A stretch of 64,000 nucleotides of DNA, taken from sequence record NC_031043.1; one strand, written 5' to 3'. The position numbers and the translations under genes were made by a program. The notes under the pieces are model-generated. The model did not search any database, was not told where the DNA came from, and saw only the letters and a program-made list of their open reading frames with translations. Shown here piece after piece: positions 19,427 to 44,344 of the stretch (the first letter of the stretch is position 1; the number at the start of each line of letters is the position of its first letter).

Positions 19427-20257
19427 ATGGACGAGCCAGAAAAGTCACTTACTGAAGGTGAGACGCCGCAAGACCCGCCATCGGGTAATTATCTACGATG
19501 GGTTTATTGGGAACTTGCTAAAGCAATGGAGGTCGGCCCGAAACTCTGGGTGCCTTTGATTCACGAGTATGCAAATAACCCTGACTACCTCGGACGCTCT
19601 TCTGCATTACCTGAAGAACGGGCACAGCGACTCACTATCGCACTAACCGGTGGTAACATCGTGGGTTTGCAACCTGACCTCACGTGGAAGCGTTTTAATG
19701 AAGGTCTGGTAATCCTCAAGATACAGTCACTGAAAGTCACCGTCACTGCAAAGCGCGGGAACTGGAGTGATAAGCAAACGGTCTGGGCGTATACCCGTCC
19801 GCAAAGCGACCACTTGAGGACAATTAATAAAGAGGATGAAGAGCAGTTACGGGAGTCAGTTGGTCGTACCTTAGACCGCTATTTCGAGAACACCGCCCAT
19901 ACCGCGACCCGCGTGATGGACCACATCCTACTCAAACTGTTCTGGCAACTCATCAATAAGTACAAGATAGATAATGTGGCATGGAAGCGGTTACTGGTGG
20001 CTTACGTCAATAACCCTGAGAACTGCCCCCAGCTGAAGAGTCGGCGTAACGATGCCCGACATAACCTTCAACAATCTGTTCGTCGAACCAAAAAGCTGAC
20101 ATGGCGTTTCTTCTTAAAGGCCCTGAAAGCGATTGATGTCCGTGGTATTGATATTGCGTTTCTCTTCACCACCGAGAGTGAGAAGGAAATCGAAATTGCC
20201 ACGAGTATTGATTTGACGAAACACACGTTTAAGAGTGGGAAAGACAAAGATGAGTAA
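19427..20257 (+). CDS. Hypothetical protein with an internally duplicated ~100-aa domain
   Basis: Two copies of W..L...Y.NNP...R..L......LTW..F...L. Confidence 0.8.
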   Translation: MDEPEKSLTEGETPQDPPSGNYLRWVYWELAKAMEVGPKLWVPLIHEYANNPDYLGRSSALPEERAQRLTIALTGGNIVGLQPDLTWKRFNEGLVILKIQSLKVTVTAKRGNWSDKQTVWAYTRPQSDHLRTINKEDEEQLRESVGRTLDRYFENTAHTATRVMDHILLKLFWQLINKYKIDNVAWKRLLVAYVNNPENCPQLKSRRNDARHNLQQSVRRTKKLTWRFFLKALKAIDVRGIDIAFLFTTESEKEIEIATSIDLTKHTFKSGKDKDE

Positions 20258-21446
20258 TATCGTAAAACCCGATGCGCGGTTAGTCGCTGCCCTCGACGGT
20301 ATGGAACAGCAGATGGATAAACTGTTGGCAACGCAAGCCGCCGCCTCAGTCCGTGGTGCAGGTGGTGGTACCGGTCCAACGACACGTGCCACTATTTTCG
20401 AAACCGACCCCACTGGTCTTCTTCCTAACTTTGACCCATTACTGCGCCAAGTTGCTTCCCCGTTTGAAGGGATAGATAAACTGGGCAGTGATGTGCTGAG
20501 TTATTTAGACCCGTCAGGTAAACTGGGGAACCTGGCCAAGAAAGCCGTTTCTGCTCTCCCGAGTGAGTTGAAGGAAGCCGGTACCAAACTCGCCCGTGGT
20601 GATATCGTTGATGCTGCGAAGGGTATTACCGGTTTGCAGAGCTTCCGTGACGTCAGTACCCTGGTGACCACCAAGGACGGTAAGTTCGGCCTGGACTTTA
20701 ATTCGGTCAAAGGTCGTATTGAGCGTTCGTTCGGTATTAACGGTGCGCTGGGTCAACTCTCCCCTGAAGTACAGAACCTCATCGGTAAAGCATCTACCGA
20801 GTTCTACGGCGATGAGATGGGTACCATCTTCAACAACGTGGTCGGTGCGGTTACCTCTGCAGACTTTAATTCGGTCTCCAGTGTGACGGATGTGATTAAC
20901 CGTATCGCTGGTCAATCTAAACTGTGGGATGTGTTCGACTTAAGTGCGGGTGCCGCATTGATTTACGGGTTGTCTGATAAGCTCGTTGAATGGGGCGCTC
21001 CAGACATGCTGGACGACGTACTGGATAAAATCACCGACGTCAAAGCCCAGAAAGCAATGATGGATGAGTTGGCTATCCGTGCCTCTGCCAGTGGTTCCCT
21101 CCAATCGACCGAACACTACGTTGACCGTTTGGATGCTAACCGCCGCCCAGCGATTGCCGACCTCGTTATCAGTAACATGATGCGCAGTGTCAGCTTCTGG
21201 GGTTCTGACCGTACCGATGCCTCGTACGGCAGCTACGGCGCGCGCATGATTGCGCTGTTCGAGAAGCTTGACCCTAACTGGGATAAAGACCCTTACGACC
21301 ACACGTCATACAGCTGCTATTATTTCACGCTGATGAATGACACGGCCTACAAAGCCTTACTGACTACTGCAAAGCGTCCGTTCTGTGCAGTGTTTGGTAT
21401 CGTGCGTCGTGATGATGTCGACACCATTATCTCGAACAACTTTTAG
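20250..21446 (+). CDS. Probable virion structural protein
   Basis: About 398 aa, helical, Gly/Ala-rich N-terminus. Assignment from synteny. Confidence 0.55.
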   Translation: MSNIVKPDARLVAALDGMEQQMDKLLATQAAASVRGAGGGTGPTTRATIFETDPTGLLPNFDPLLRQVASPFEGIDKLGSDVLSYLDPSGKLGNLAKKAVSALPSELKEAGTKLARGDIVDAAKGITGLQSFRDVSTLVTTKDGKFGLDFNSVKGRIERSFGINGALGQLSPEVQNLIGKASTEFYGDEMGTIFNNVVGAVTSADFNSVSSVTDVINRIAGQSKLWDVFDLSAGAALIYGLSDKLVEWGAPDMLDDVLDKITDVKAQKAMMDELAIRASASGSLQSTEHYVDRLDANRRPAIADLVISNMMRSVSFWGSDRTDASYGSYGARMIALFEKLDPNWDKDPYDHTSYSCYYFTLMNDTAYKALLTTAKRPFCAVFGIVRRDDVDTIISNNF

Positions 21447-21457
21447 TGGGGAAACAC

Positions 21458-22450
21458 ATGGTTACGATTGACCCGAAGGTTGTACCGCTCACTCGATTGA
21501 TGGGACTCATCAGCACGATTAAAGGCGGTAATCGATACGGTATCCCAGACGCAGAACGTGAACTGGTGATATCTCGTATTCAGCACGACGTGCGGTTAGG
21601 GATTGTGTACCCGAGAGTATTCCGGGAAGACATGATGGAACCCGAATTATTAGAACCTTATCGAACGGGGAAACACGACGACGAGTACGGTGTGGCGATG
21701 GCGTTGGAACACGGTATGAACTTACCGCTTGCAAATGCTAAGCAATATAACCCGCTGAAATACACCCATCGTGAAGGCAAGTGGCTACGTGATACTAGCT
21801 ACTACATGCATTTGCGTGGTATTGGTGCGGCGGCAATATTCAGTCATGTGGGCGATGACACCGATGGACTGAACCACATCAACATCTATTCCGATGCCAA
21901 AACGTTTGTCGGGGCATGTGCCAGTAACTTTACCGAGGCTCACCATGAGACTCGTGATGGTACCTTCCGTACGTTGGAAGGTTATTATCACTGGTTGCGT
22001 ATTCGTGATTGGATGCGGGCGACGAATCAACCGTTCGCTAATATGGCGGAAATGGAAGAGAAGTATCCGGGTATTCATCGTTTGCGTAATCAGTCAGGGC
22101 CTGAAGCAATTCGTGACGGTCGCAAGCTGAAGTCTAACTTGTACGGCGGCACTACTTACAAAGTGGCCGGGTTCTCAGAGGAAGCGACACAGGACTTTAA
22201 GTGGGCGTTGGCATACAAGCTACATGCTTTGCACTTCAATAATGTGACGCTAGGTAATTATTTGTCGTGTCTGGTGTACAGCGGATTCCCTTTGAAGCAC
22301 TACTACGTGTATCAGGGAAAAGCGAAGTTCCCAGCGTACAATGAATGGCTACCTAATATCTTGACTGCGCTGTTGGAGCATATTGACCCTAACGGTGCGG
22401 ACTTTGATCTCGAAGCCTTACAGGCCAAAATCATTGAGGGTTCCGTATGA
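21458..22450 (+). CDS. NADAR-family (T4 gp30.3-like) domain protein with N-terminal extra domain
   Basis: GACASNFTEAHHETRDGTFRTLEGYYHWLR and QSGPEAIRDGRKL match NADAR SNF...DG..F..LEG and SG..A...GR motifs. Confidence 0.7.
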   Translation: MVTIDPKVVPLTRLMGLISTIKGGNRYGIPDAERELVISRIQHDVRLGIVYPRVFREDMMEPELLEPYRTGKHDDEYGVAMALEHGMNLPLANAKQYNPLKYTHREGKWLRDTSYYMHLRGIGAAAIFSHVGDDTDGLNHINIYSDAKTFVGACASNFTEAHHETRDGTFRTLEGYYHWLRIRDWMRATNQPFANMAEMEEKYPGIHRLRNQSGPEAIRDGRKLKSNLYGGTTYKVAGFSEEATQDFKWALAYKLHALHFNNVTLGNYLSCLVYSGFPLKHYYVYQGKAKFPAYNEWLPNILTALLEHIDPNGADFDLEALQAKIIEGSV

Positions 22451-23106
22451 GTCTTTCAGCATTACTGCAAGGGATTGACAACGACAAAGAGTGGGGTCAC
22501 CAGCAAGCGGCTCAAGAATCTATCTCGACTGAGAAAGAGAAAGAGTATTGCCTGTGGGTGAAACCAACGTCGGCGGGGTGGCAGTGGTTGGGTGAGCAAC
22601 AGAGCACCCCAACACTGGATATCCTGATGCCGATTGAAGGTGCACGTCGTCGCTGTCGTATTCGTCCTGATGGTGCGAAGCTTACCTTAAAGCAACGCAT
22701 CAATAATGAAACAGTAGAAGAGAACAGCGATATCGGTTTCGGTATGGCCTTATCTTTCTACGCTGACGGTTTCAATGCCCATCTGTTCCGTCGCATCCAT
22801 TTGGAAGCGGCACCTGAACTGATGCAGCAGGGCGCGAAACACTGGGACATCGATATTTTCCATATCGTACAATCCCATCCGGTACTGCCAGACATCGGTG
22901 CATTAAACGACCTGTCTGACACACTGCGTCAGGGCACAGCTTACGGCGACTTGGTGAAAGTCGAGCTGGAAGTGGATAAGTTCTTCATTGACAGCATCCG
23001 TGAACTGATACCGTTCGAAGTGGAAGAGATTTACGCGTCCCGTCCAAAAGACGAAGAGACGCAGGTTATGATTGCCGATTACTGGGACAATGTCACCAGC
23101 ATCTAA
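22447..23106 (+). CDS. CYTH / triphosphate-tunnel metalloenzyme fold protein
   Basis: EKEKEY (ExExK-like), RCRIR, LTLKQ, VEEN, WDIDIF and VELEV occur in CYTH order. Confidence 0.75.
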   Translation: MSLSALLQGIDNDKEWGHQQAAQESISTEKEKEYCLWVKPTSAGWQWLGEQQSTPTLDILMPIEGARRRCRIRPDGAKLTLKQRINNETVEENSDIGFGMALSFYADGFNAHLFRRIHLEAAPELMQQGAKHWDIDIFHIVQSHPVLPDIGALNDLSDTLRQGTAYGDLVKVELEVDKFFIDSIRELIPFEVEEIYASRPKDEETQVMIADYWDNVTSI

Positions 23107-23108
23107 GT

Positions 23109-23145
23109 AAGTCCCAGTCCTTCGGGGCTGGGCTTCTTTTATTTT
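23109..23145 (+). terminator. Intrinsic terminator (UUCG loop)
   Basis: CCCAGTCC-TTCG-GGGCTGGG followed by a T-run. Confidence 0.85.
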
Positions 23146-23160
23146 CTAAGGAAAAGACGA

Positions 23161-23529
23161 ATGTTAAACGTTAAGGTTAGTAGAGAAGATGTGTTGACCA
23201 TCAACGGTCTTGAAGTACCGGGCGGGAACGCACCCCGCTTTACCTCTCTGTTCCGTCACGTCACCCCAAAAGCGAAAATGATTATCGGTGAACCTGAGGG
23301 TCACACGGTCAAGCACCCTAGCCCACAGACGCACTACGTGGCGCTGGTACGCACTGACCAAGAGATGTTTGACATGCTCAAGCAATTCGTCCACGACGGT
23401 CCGGTAGATATGGAAACCGAAGAGGTGGTTATCATTCGTGATGACGGTCTATTCAATGGTAAGCGTTACGCTGAGATTTACCATGTAATTAAACGACCAG
23501 AACGTAAGGCGCAATACGACGACGAGTAA
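23161..23529 (+). CDS. Hypothetical protein
   Basis: AAGGA RBS. Confidence 0.75.
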   Translation: MLNVKVSREDVLTINGLEVPGGNAPRFTSLFRHVTPKAKMIIGEPEGHTVKHPSPQTHYVALVRTDQEMFDMLKQFVHDGPVDMETEEVVIIRDDGLFNGKRYAEIYHVIKRPERKAQYDDE

Positions 23530-23555
23530 TTTTTACATTTCGGTATTACCTTATG
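23530..23555 (+). promoter_or_regulatory. Class-B promoter motif TTTTTACAT-N13-TATG
   Basis: Fixed-spacing motif. The spacer contains TATTAC. Confidence 0.6.
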
Positions 23556-23594
23556 CTGAAGTTCTGTTCTTTTAGTGTCGAGGCACATGCGTAA

Positions 23595-23741
23595 ATGCGT
23601 AAACGATTTTGGCGTTCGGTATTGACCACATTAGTAGTTATGGCTGTTATTGGTTACGGGTGCGCAACCGTACAACTCATGATGTGGAAAGGTGTATTAC
23701 GAACGTCCCTATATTCTCCTGTTAGAGGTGCCAATGAATAA
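23595..23741 (+). CDS. 48-aa membrane/lipoprotein-like peptide, not in ORF track (MRKRFWRSVLTTLVVMAVIGYGCATVQ...)
   Basis: Basic N-region, hydrophobic H-region, then G-C. Stop overlaps the next start. Confidence 0.5.
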   Translation: MRKRFWRSVLTTLVVMAVIGYGCATVQLMMWKGVLRTSLYSPVRGANE

Positions 23742-24177
23742 GCTCGATTTCGAAGACCCGTTTTTCACGTTGAATGGAATGACCACCGAAGTCCCTTCAC
23801 CGGAAATGAAAGCACTGCTTACTCGCGTTCGCGCGTGGTGTAAAGACCATCCGATTAATATCGTACTGACCACCAATCCGTTGGTGTCTAAGCCGGTTAC
23901 CGATGAAGACGGTTTGCATCTCCCGATTATTGAAGACCTCGAGCCGAAGTTAGCCGACTTCATCTTCAATTACGCCGAGCTGCACAACGACGTCGATGGT
24001 GACTACGGTATGATTTGTCTGAAAAGCCGTGTACCACAAACCAAAGACTGGAAGGTCGTGGACAATACCCGCTTCTCTCCAAACGTGGGTGCAACGGTAT
24101 TGACCTTTATCCCGCCGGTCGAAGAAGGCGGTGAGCCACGTACCACGATTCAGTTCTGGGAGAAACCTGATGAATAA
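23734..24177 (+). CDS. Hypothetical protein
   Basis: GAGG RBS before ATG 23734 (track GTG 23692 is unlikely). Confidence 0.75.
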   Translation: MNKLDFEDPFFTLNGMTTEVPSPEMKALLTRVRAWCKDHPINIVLTTNPLVSKPVTDEDGLHLPIIEDLEPKLADFIFNYAELHNDVDGDYGMICLKSRVPQTKDWKVVDNTRFSPNVGATVLTFIPPVEEGGEPRTTIQFWEKPDE

Positions 24178-24568
24178 ATTAGCGCTGGACGATACCGGTG
24201 TCGTCATTAACGACAAGCCGGTCGGTAACCTGAACTTAGACCGTTGGGTTCACCACGAGCTGGAAGAACTGTTCGGGAACCGTGAGTTTTACATTACGCT
24301 GGTTTCCGAAGCGCCGACTACCGAAGGGTGGTTGAACCGTATGCCGCTGATGCGTGATGTTACCGAAGATGTGTTTGTCTCGGTTTATCGCGCAGCCACT
24401 ATCCGCGGTTGGGTCATTCACACTGAGTCGGCAGCTAACCTGTCACAGCTGGCCCAGAAAGCGGTACCGTTCGCGGCTGGTAAAGTACCTGCTGGTGCAG
24501 ACGACCTGCTGCTGTGGGTAGACTTCGACCCTCAAACCAAACAAACCAAATACGCTATCGTTTACTAA
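24170..24568 (+). CDS. Hypothetical protein
   Basis: GGAG RBS before ATG 24170. Confidence 0.75.
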   Translation: MNKLALDDTGVVINDKPVGNLNLDRWVHHELEELFGNREFYITLVSEAPTTEGWLNRMPLMRDVTEDVFVSVYRAATIRGWVIHTESAANLSQLAQKAVPFAAGKVPAGADDLLLWVDFDPQTKQTKYAIVY

Positions 24569-24580
24569 TTGGGAAATGTC

Positions 24581-25018
24581 ATGCAAGAGAATATGCTTAA
24601 TACGCTGGAACACACCGACGGCGATTTGTACGTTAATAACCTGACCATCGTGTTGGACAAAATGGATGCGGCGTATCTGGATGCGCTGGTTGCCCGGTTC
24701 CCGAATCCGGTGCCGATGGTATTGGTTGACAGTCATGCGTCTATCCCGATGGAAATGAACGTGGACGTGCTGGAAGTGAAAGCCATCGCGCCGTACGAAG
24801 CATCGGGTGTAATTAACTCCTCGTCTGACTACTCGCTTATTACTAACGAGACGTTGAAGAAAGCCATCTGTAAAGAACTGATTGGTTCCCTTCATCCTAT
24901 GGTTATGGAAGCACCAGTACCTCCGGCGGATTTTGATTACTCAGAAGCGTTATTCATTCTGTGCCTTGAAGACCTTCATGGTGCGGTGAACTACTCGCTC
25001 GCTTATATCAAAAAGTAA
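24581..25018 (+). CDS. Hypothetical acidic protein
   Basis: In-operon ORF ending at a terminator. Confidence 0.7.
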   Translation: MQENMLNTLEHTDGDLYVNNLTIVLDKMDAAYLDALVARFPNPVPMVLVDSHASIPMEMNVDVLEVKAIAPYEASGVINSSSDYSLITNETLKKAICKELIGSLHPMVMEAPVPPADFDYSEALFILCLEDLHGAVNYSLAYIKK

Positions 25019-43537: not shown

Positions 43538-44344
43538 ATGGAAAACATGACGTTGCGTTATAACTGCGTCGCGCTCGCAGGGGTTAACCAACCCGCAGAG
43601 ATTCAGAAAGACGGCCGTGGCTATCGCCGCATGCTGTTAGGCGCATTGAACGTGTTCAACTCAGAGAACATTTTCTACGCTTACAATGAATCAAAGCATG
43701 TCTTCGAACGTTCTAACATTTTCATGCGCAAAGTGGCGGCCGGTAACCTGTACGGTGAACGCGACCACCCGGCGTGGGAAAAGAACATGACTGAGGCGGA
43801 GTTTATAGACCGCAACGAGTGGATTGAGATTACCAACACCGCATTCCATGTGCGTGATGTGGAAGTCATCGTCACCAGCGAAGTCTGTAACGGGTTACCT
43901 GTGGTTGAAATCTGGGGTTGGATTAAACCAGAAGACAACGAACTCGGCCGTCAGTTAGAAGCTGCTTTGAATAACCCTGACCAGAACGTCTGCTTCTCGC
44001 TCCGTGCGATTGTGCGACAAGGTGTTGTGGGTGGTGTACGTCAGCGTCGTATTGATAAACTGGTCACCTTCGACTGGGTTATTGAAGACGGCCTGCGTAT
44101 CTGTAACAAATATTCCGCCATGGTTCGTGGTTCTAAGGTGGCTCAAGAATCAACCCGCACTTACCTTGACCGTCCGGTCTCGCGTGAAGCCTGCGAAGAG
44201 ATTATCCGCTCTGGCGCTCGCCAGTTGTCGGTGGCTACCGAATCACGTCGTCGTCAAGTGGTTGACTCAGCTCGTGACATGCTCACGAAGATTGACAGTC
44301 GTCCACAGATGACCCGTGCTGGTTTGGGAGCGAGGGCTTGGTAA
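43538..44344 (+). CDS. Prohead serine protease (phiKZ gp175 / SPN3US gp245-like)
   Basis: His motif YGERDHP, Ser motif CFSLRA, Asp motif TFDWV. C-terminal AQE-204 and ATE-235 self-cleavage-type sites. Confidence 0.88.
   Translation: MENMTLRYNCVALAGVNQPAEIQKDGRGYRRMLLGALNVFNSENIFYAYNESKHVFERSNIFMRKVAAGNLYGERDHPAWEKNMTEAEFIDRNEWIEITNTAFHVRDVEVIVTSEVCNGLPVVEIWGWIKPEDNELGRQLEAALNNPDQNVCFSLRAIVRQGVVGGVRQRRIDKLVTFDWVIEDGLRICNKYSAMVRGSKVAQESTRTYLDRPVSREACEEIIRSGARQLSVATESRRRQVVDSARDMLTKIDSRPQMTRAGLGARAW

Follow-up and report, generated by a model that had tools for sequence, protein, structure and literature searches.

A predicted prohead-protease substrate of Erwinia jumbo phage Phobos with a divergent triphosphate tunnel metalloenzyme fold

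The DNA analysed here (the window) is the final 64 kb of Erwinia jumbo phage vB_EamM_Phobos (NC_031043, 229,501 bp, genus Derbicusvirus); the match to this record is 100% identical, and window coordinates equal record coordinates minus 165,501. Its genes gp211, gp212, gp213 and gp214 form a tightly packed string, and the last of them, gp214, is the subject of this work. We propose that its product is a head protein with a cleavable leader and the fold of triphosphate tunnel metalloenzymes (TTM; CYTH-like superfamily). The features of gp214 are as follows.

22447..23106, + strand: gp214 coding sequence with stop codon, 219 aa; encodes the precursor of the TTM protein, annotated as hypothetical; ortholog of SPN3US gp225
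22447..22518, + strand: putative N-terminal propeptide, 24 residues; low-confidence helix in the model
22510..22521, + strand: predicted prohead-protease site A22-Q23-E24/S25 (P3-P1'), codons 22-25; homologous to ARE-24 of gp225
22519..23103, + strand: predicted mature gp214, S25-I219, about 22 kDa, single TTM/CYTH β-barrel domain
22537..22551, + strand: β1 motif E31-K-E33-Y-C35, counterpart of ExExK in the hhalign register
22651..22659, + strand: R69-C-R71, RxR phosphate-binding pair, aligned with CYTH 'RvR'
22957..22971, + strand: β8 K171-V-E173-L-E175, metal-binding ExE after an invariant Lys

A first-pass annotation, made by a model from the letters of the window, had assigned gp214 to the CYTH fold. 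This assignment was borne out by a structural match and by profile comparison. The AlphaFold2 model of gp214 (pLDDT 90.3, pTM 0.82) is confident for residues 25-219, is of low confidence for the helix formed by residues 1-24, and has the eight-stranded antiparallel β-barrel tunnel fold. Top PDB matches in Foldseek were NeuTTM, B. anthracis GBAA_1210, YgiF, SaTTM, AtTTM3, ThTPase and the vaccinia D1 triphosphatase; Mediator Med18/20 was also among the fold matches. In BFVD, the best matches were CYTH proteins of the jumbo phages Ralstonia RP12, RSF1 and RSL2.

For profile comparison, 50 genuine CYTH domains from PF01928 matches in Pseudomonadota genomes were aligned to serve as a reference. The broad phage family of gp214 (alignment A2) matched this reference in hhalign over 131 columns with a probability of 89.9% (E 1.7e-6), and matched the subset of standalone CYTH proteins with a probability of 95.5% (E 1.4e-8). 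Real scores lay between 46 and 57, and those of the controls (reversed and 40 column-shuffled alignments) were at most 20. On the basis of structure prediction and profile-profile comparison, mature gp214 is almost certainly a single-domain protein of the TTM fold.

The relatives of gp214 are few. Only 31, nearly all of about 200-230 aa, were returned when 1.84 billion cluster representatives were searched with a profile, and an alignment-based search of a 5.8-billion-protein database gave no Pfam-labelled relatives. Two of the most distant relatives match PF01928 below threshold (E 0.002-0.004), and CYTH is the sole Pfam family matched by more than one member of the family. Searches with gp214 and its family profiles against Pfam, NCBIfam and PDB sequences gave nothing meaningful, PHROGs returned a family of unknown function only, and the ESM Atlas contributed a weak CYTH lead for gp214 (rank 13, score 0.87). 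Comparison with the single YgiF sequence in hhalign reached a probability of just 2.7%; a search for YgiF homologs gave only sequences of more than 76% identity, unfit for profile building.

The profile alignment assigned the residues of gp214 to the CYTH motifs as follows: (i) E31-x-E33-x-C35 to ExExK; (ii) R69-x-R71 to RxR; (iii) T80-x-K82 to TxK; (iv) E91 to the β5 glutamate; (v) R116 to the β6 arginine; (vi) D134/D136 to the β7 acidic pair; (vii) E173-x-E175 to the β8 ExE (CYTH 'ElELe'). In the broad family, with identities as low as about 20%, E31, E33, R69, R71, K82, E91 and K171 are kept in all 35 of 35 members, E173 and R116 in 34/35 each, E175 in 33/35 and D136 within 33-34/35. K171, located two residues ahead of the β8 ExE, is a family-specific invariant. 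The basic tunnel wall, made up of RxR, the lysine on the next strand and K/RxR on β6, is found in gp214. gp214 retains the metal-binding glutamate pairs of β1 (E31/E33) and β8 (E173/E175), together with R69, R71, K82 and R116 for phosphate binding.

The β1 motif had initially been read as ExExE and gp214 consequently regarded as possibly inactive. This register (E29-x-E31-x-E33) is two residues off and was rejected, as the profile alignment places ExExK at E31, E33 and C35 with both catalytic glutamates intact. E29 is conserved in the close group only; therefore, the correct reading is that the hallmark lysine has been replaced by Cys35. Inactivity of gp214 seems unlikely because the four metal-binding glutamates and the core arginine and lysine residues are invariant to about 20% identity. 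PF01928 cluster 7 (AtTTM1/2) is likewise devoid of the ExExK motif (PMC8233210), so that loss of the lysine marks a divergent branch and is no bar to membership in the superfamily.

Evidence on the leader comes from Salmonella phage SPN3US. Its gp225 (SPN3US_0225) is 48.6% identical to gp214 over 100% of the length (219 aa), and the SPN3US gene order gp223-224-225 corresponds to gp212-213-214 of Phobos. By mass spectrometry, gp225 was identified as a new substrate of the SPN3US prohead protease gp245, with a 24-residue N-terminal propeptide that is cut off at ARE-24 (Scheuch et al. 2023, PMC10052503). Cleavage lowers its mass from 25.1 to 22.3 kDa, and the protein was classed as "Head, low abundance" with virions yielding 341 and tailless heads 265 peptide-spectrum matches (PMC10052503). 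At the homologous position, gp225 reads V-A-R-E/S-I-S-T-E-K-E and gp214 A-A-Q-E/S-I-S-T-E-K-E. The ortholog is thus packaged and cut at the homologous site, and packaging and maturation are in this respect already known. The first-pass annotation had pointed out that the leader of gp214 ends in A-Q-E followed by serine (residues 22-25) shortly before EKEKEY (residues 29-34), which is correct, and had taken it for a prohead-protease propeptide of a head component; this view finds its support in the ARE-24 cut of gp225 and its presence in purified heads (PMC10052503).

The protease presumed to act on this site is encoded in the same genome and window.

43538..44344, + strand: gp227, annotated prohead (head maturation) protease; predicted autocleavage V-A-Q-E204/S at 44141..44149

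The junction of the gp214 leader recurs in gp227 itself, as had been observed in the first pass; its AQE-204 corresponds to AQE-203, at which SPN3US gp245 autocleaves (PMC10052503). The sequence logo of gp245 calls for A-x-E with P4 Val (or Ala) and P1' Ser (PMC10052503), and the gp214 site A-A-Q-E24/S25 fits this preference. Among 33 homologs with at least 40% identity, P1 is Glu in 33/33, P1' Ser in 31/33, P3 Ala in 30/33 and P4 Val or Ala in 32/33. The remainder of the leader varies among the same proteins, 32 of which have a leader of 24-27 residues. In the whole Phobos genome, the motif [VA]A.E[SA] occurs at residues 11-45 in three of 341 open reading frames (ORFs) of at least 100 aa, two of which are orthologs of the SPN3US short-propeptide substrates gp225 and gp45, the latter being cut at ASE-20 (PMC10052503). 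Judged from these comparisons of sequences, the cleavage motif of gp214 is more than chance. The leader resembles, by analogy, a capsid-targeting leader. We consider it very probable that gp214 is packaged and cleaved in Phobos.

The Phobos ortholog of gp45 is a 447-aa virion protein (genome 42761-44104) and a second predicted short-propeptide head protein; its V-A-S-E/S at residue 20 matches the published ASE-20 cut. The third ORF with the motif is a putative gene of 123 aa around genome position 92930 (+), with V-A-L-E/A at residue 32.

Several other members of the family deserve mention. The homolog P0061 from a metagenomic jumbo-phage contig (L138:6001-7203) has 400 aa, with an extra N-terminal region of about 180 residues that precedes an internal V-A-Q-E/A site and then the TTM domain. 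This extension is devoid of a Phobos homolog; cleavage, if it occurs, would turn it into a long propeptide or release it as a second product. The most canonical-looking distant members (P0069-P0072; L139:2729-3331 and relatives) have a short turn between β7 and β8 and a short N-terminus without the A-x-E leader. Their sequences suggest that the propeptide, and perhaps packaging too, was gained or lost within the gp214 family. In the Salmonella phages SPFM7/8/9/12/20, the annotated homologs (P0054-P0058, 166-206 aa) match gp214 only piecewise, in up to nine stretches. A full-length 219-aa homolog was found by tblastn in other SPFM phages (SPFM2, 3, 4, 11 and others), and those five genomes are absent among the tblastn matches listed; their annotations may be frameshifted or mis-called.

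The remaining features of the gene string are listed below.

20250..21446, + strand: gp212, ortholog of SPN3US gp223
21446..22450, + strand: gp213, upstream gene; NADAR fold preceded by a helical extension at the N-terminus; ortholog of SPN3US gp224
23113..23142, + strand: terminator-like hairpin (23113-23132) and T-run, end of the gp211-gp214 gene string

The stop codon of gp213 and the start codon of gp214 overlap by 4 nt as ATGA (22447-22450), gp212 and gp213 share a single nucleotide, and the gp213-gp214 pair is predicted to be translationally coupled; the coupling of genes noted in the first pass is thus present. Likewise, a NADAR fold is present in gp213, covering residues ~113-334, with the N-terminal ~110 residues being helical and without a clear structural match. 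Pfam NADAR did not match gp213. A motif of gp213, 'NIYS...SNF...TLEGYYH.LR', is invariant in six homologs, and a related-locus search for gp213 in viral contigs found none. Downstream of the hairpin, gp215-gp218 (window 23161-25018) are small hypothetical genes without Pfam matches, with gp215 being assigned to phrog_37149, a family of unknown function.

Joint action of gp214 with the NADAR protein, which had been suggested earlier, is without support. The gp212 ortholog gp223 is a tail protein by proteomics, and the gp213 ortholog gp224 is absent from the SPN3US virion protein table (PMC10052503). In a distant relative, the gp212-like gene is directly followed by the CYTH gene, and a NADAR-like gene is missing from this position. 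A virion partnership of gp214 and gp213 was rejected on these two grounds, the missing gp224 and the missing NADAR-like gene; the gp212-gp213-gp214 linkage looks like conserved core synteny and not like evidence of a functional pair in the virion.

The following course of events is proposed. gp214 would be made as a 219-residue precursor, with the 24-residue leader most likely serving as its guide into the prohead in the manner of a T4 capsid-targeting sequence. Cleavage by gp227 after A-Q-E24 would then yield a low-copy head protein of ~22 kDa, as measured for gp225. The mature protein is probably a phosphohydrolase that depends on a divalent metal and acts on a substrate bearing a triphosphate; when the DNA and the virion RNA polymerase leave the capsid, it might go with them and act in the first minutes of infection. 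A precedent is provided by T4 Alt and the internal proteins, which carry short N-terminal targeting peptides that are removed by the prohead protease and which are ejected (PMC7411985).

As a whole, the picture of a protease-trimmed, head-packaged, active TTM phosphohydrolase that is ejected and acts early is the one we favour, with some reserve. Its parts differ in strength. gp214 is probably a catalytically active hydrolase, to judge from its conserved residues; its ejection into the host, argued by analogy, is evenly poised. Candidate substrates are inorganic triphosphate (PPPi) or polyphosphate (polyP), nucleoside triphosphates, 5'-triphosphorylated RNA and (p)ppGpp, of which no single one rises above the improbable. 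The more specific scenario that few copies of an active TTM hydrolase are ejected with the virion RNA polymerase and act early on triphosphate species of the host cell is possible, though doubtful. If true, phages would have their first described case of a TTM effector delivered by the virion. Removal of the γ-phosphate from 5'-triphosphorylated RNA could then steer host transcripts towards decay that depends on the 5' end; alternatively, the enzyme could destroy the stress signals PPPi, polyP or (p)ppGpp.

Several observations weigh against the favoured picture. The Pfam CYTH model (PF01928, gathering threshold 23.2 bits) gave no match to gp214 at E≤1, nor any match in the whole Phobos genome at E≤10. 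Position 35 is occupied by C, S, V or T across the family, with cysteine in gp214, in place of the ExExK lysine. The first basic residue of the β6 K/RxR (position 114) is Arg in distant members only and V or F in the Phobos group. With the ExExK lysine and the β6 basic residue lost, activity or substrate could therefore differ from those of known TTMs; K171 might spatially replace the missing β1 lysine. Regarding delivery, the proteomic evidence for head location and cleavage is from SPN3US gp225, not from Phobos. The function of gp225 was given as unknown and the protein is not among the listed ejection proteins (PMC10052503), and location in the head is no proof of ejection.

The alternative that survives best, if still unlikely, is that gp214 is a pseudoenzyme or structural head component whose barrel serves as a phosphate- or DNA-binding module or assembly factor without catalysis. 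Such a role would accommodate the exchange of the ExExK lysine for Cys35, the loss of the β6 basic residue in the close family and the failure of Pfam CYTH to detect gp214, and Mediator Med18/20 among the fold matches sets a precedent for a non-catalytic barrel. Moreover, conserved cleaved head proteins are viewed by the SPN3US authors as likely assembly and function factors (PMC10052503). However, (near-)invariance of the four metal-binding glutamates and of E91, R69, R71, K82, R116 and K171 at ~20% identity is what would be expected of a working active site. In addition, of all cleaved SPN3US head proteins, gp225 is the one with the smallest number of homologs, and phiKZ lacks one altogether (PMC10052503); this fits an accessory better than a core structural protein.

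Less probable again is a TTM hydrolase that is active yet not ejected as an effector, doing its work in the prohead, in the capsid or, ahead of packaging, late in the infected cell. The evidence indeed extends to head location and cleavage only, but most internal, processed, low-copy head proteins with short leaders in phiKZ-like phages and T4 are ejection proteins, and no triphosphatase substrate is evident in a DNA-filled capsid.

The possibility that gp214 is not packaged or not cleaved in Phobos, with AQE/S being an inherited relic, draws on the fact that no Phobos virion proteome was found. It is very improbable in view of the strong conservation of the site across the family, of the conserved protease with its autocleavage site, and of CR5, a close relative of Phobos, which has homologs of all nine processed proteins (PMC10052503, Table 3).

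Equally far-fetched is the reading of gp214 as a nucleotide cyclase of class IV (CyaB-like) that, once delivered, would produce cAMP or a different cyclic nucleotide in the host. Class IV cyclases are marked by HF before ExExK, a missing central Arg of RxR and the exchange of the second β8 Glu for Ala (Vogt et al. 2021, PMC8233210), none of which (0/3) was found in gp214: S27/T28 stand in place of HF four residues before ExE, and R69/R71 and E175 are kept. A cyclase was rejected on these grounds; lacking all class IV marks, gp214 therefore resembles a two-metal phosphohydrolase, and its motif set, as far as residues can tell, is hydrolase-type, not cyclase-type.

Packaging and cleavage of SPN3US gp225 are already published (PMC10052503). 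Some members of the gp214 family have already been automatically labelled CYTH, for instance in a JGI name and in the name under which UniRef lists the Wellington homolog, and PMC7824862 mentions jumbo-phage CYTH triphosphatases in general terms. In the searched literature, which did not cover the supplements of PMC7824862, neither a link between the cleaved head protein and a TTM enzyme nor a description of the ExExC/K171 variant was found. What is added here is the TTM fold and the analysis of catalytic residues for the gp225/gp214 family. Heads of phiKZ/SPN3US-like jumbo phages contain about 50 proteins, most of them without known function. For one of these anonymous head proteins, gp225/gp214, a testable enzymatic function can now be put forward, that of a divergent TTM with a complete hydrolase-type residue set. 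gp214 is thereby a further candidate for the short list of enzymes pre-packaged by phages for the start of infection, and its family is a CYTH branch missed by Pfam, with ExExC instead of ExExK.

Among known systems, SPN3US gp225 is the closest counterpart, being a full-length ortholog with the same neighbours and a 24-residue leader that ends in A-x-E/S-I-S-T-E. The two sites differ at P2 (Gln in Phobos, Arg in SPN3US) and at P4 (Ala in Phobos, Val in SPN3US). Compared with standalone bacterial and archaeal TTMs (NeuTTM, 2FBL/3TYP; SaTTM, 7NS9; B. halodurans BH2851, 2GFG; YgiF, 5A60), gp214 shares 12-16% identity and is missed by the Pfam model. It deviates from them by Cys35 in place of the ExExK lysine, by the extra invariant K171, by an insert of ~30 residues between β7 and β8 that forms helix 150-161 in the model, and by its putative N-terminal propeptide and virion location, the location being that of the SPN3US ortholog. 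As in T4 Alt and IPI-III, a short N-terminal leader is cut, in gp214 by prediction, after Glu by the prohead protease. The T4 proteins are enzymes or effectors that the head keeps ready to be delivered along with the DNA, which for gp214 would imply targeting and ejection of the same kind; neither they nor their protease family are related to gp214 and gp227. Viral TTM RNA triphosphatases (mimivirus, vaccinia D1, baculovirus LEF-4 and the yeast Cet1), by contrast, are parts of capping enzymes and are structurally less similar to gp214 than bacterial TTMs are, and no capping machinery is evident here.
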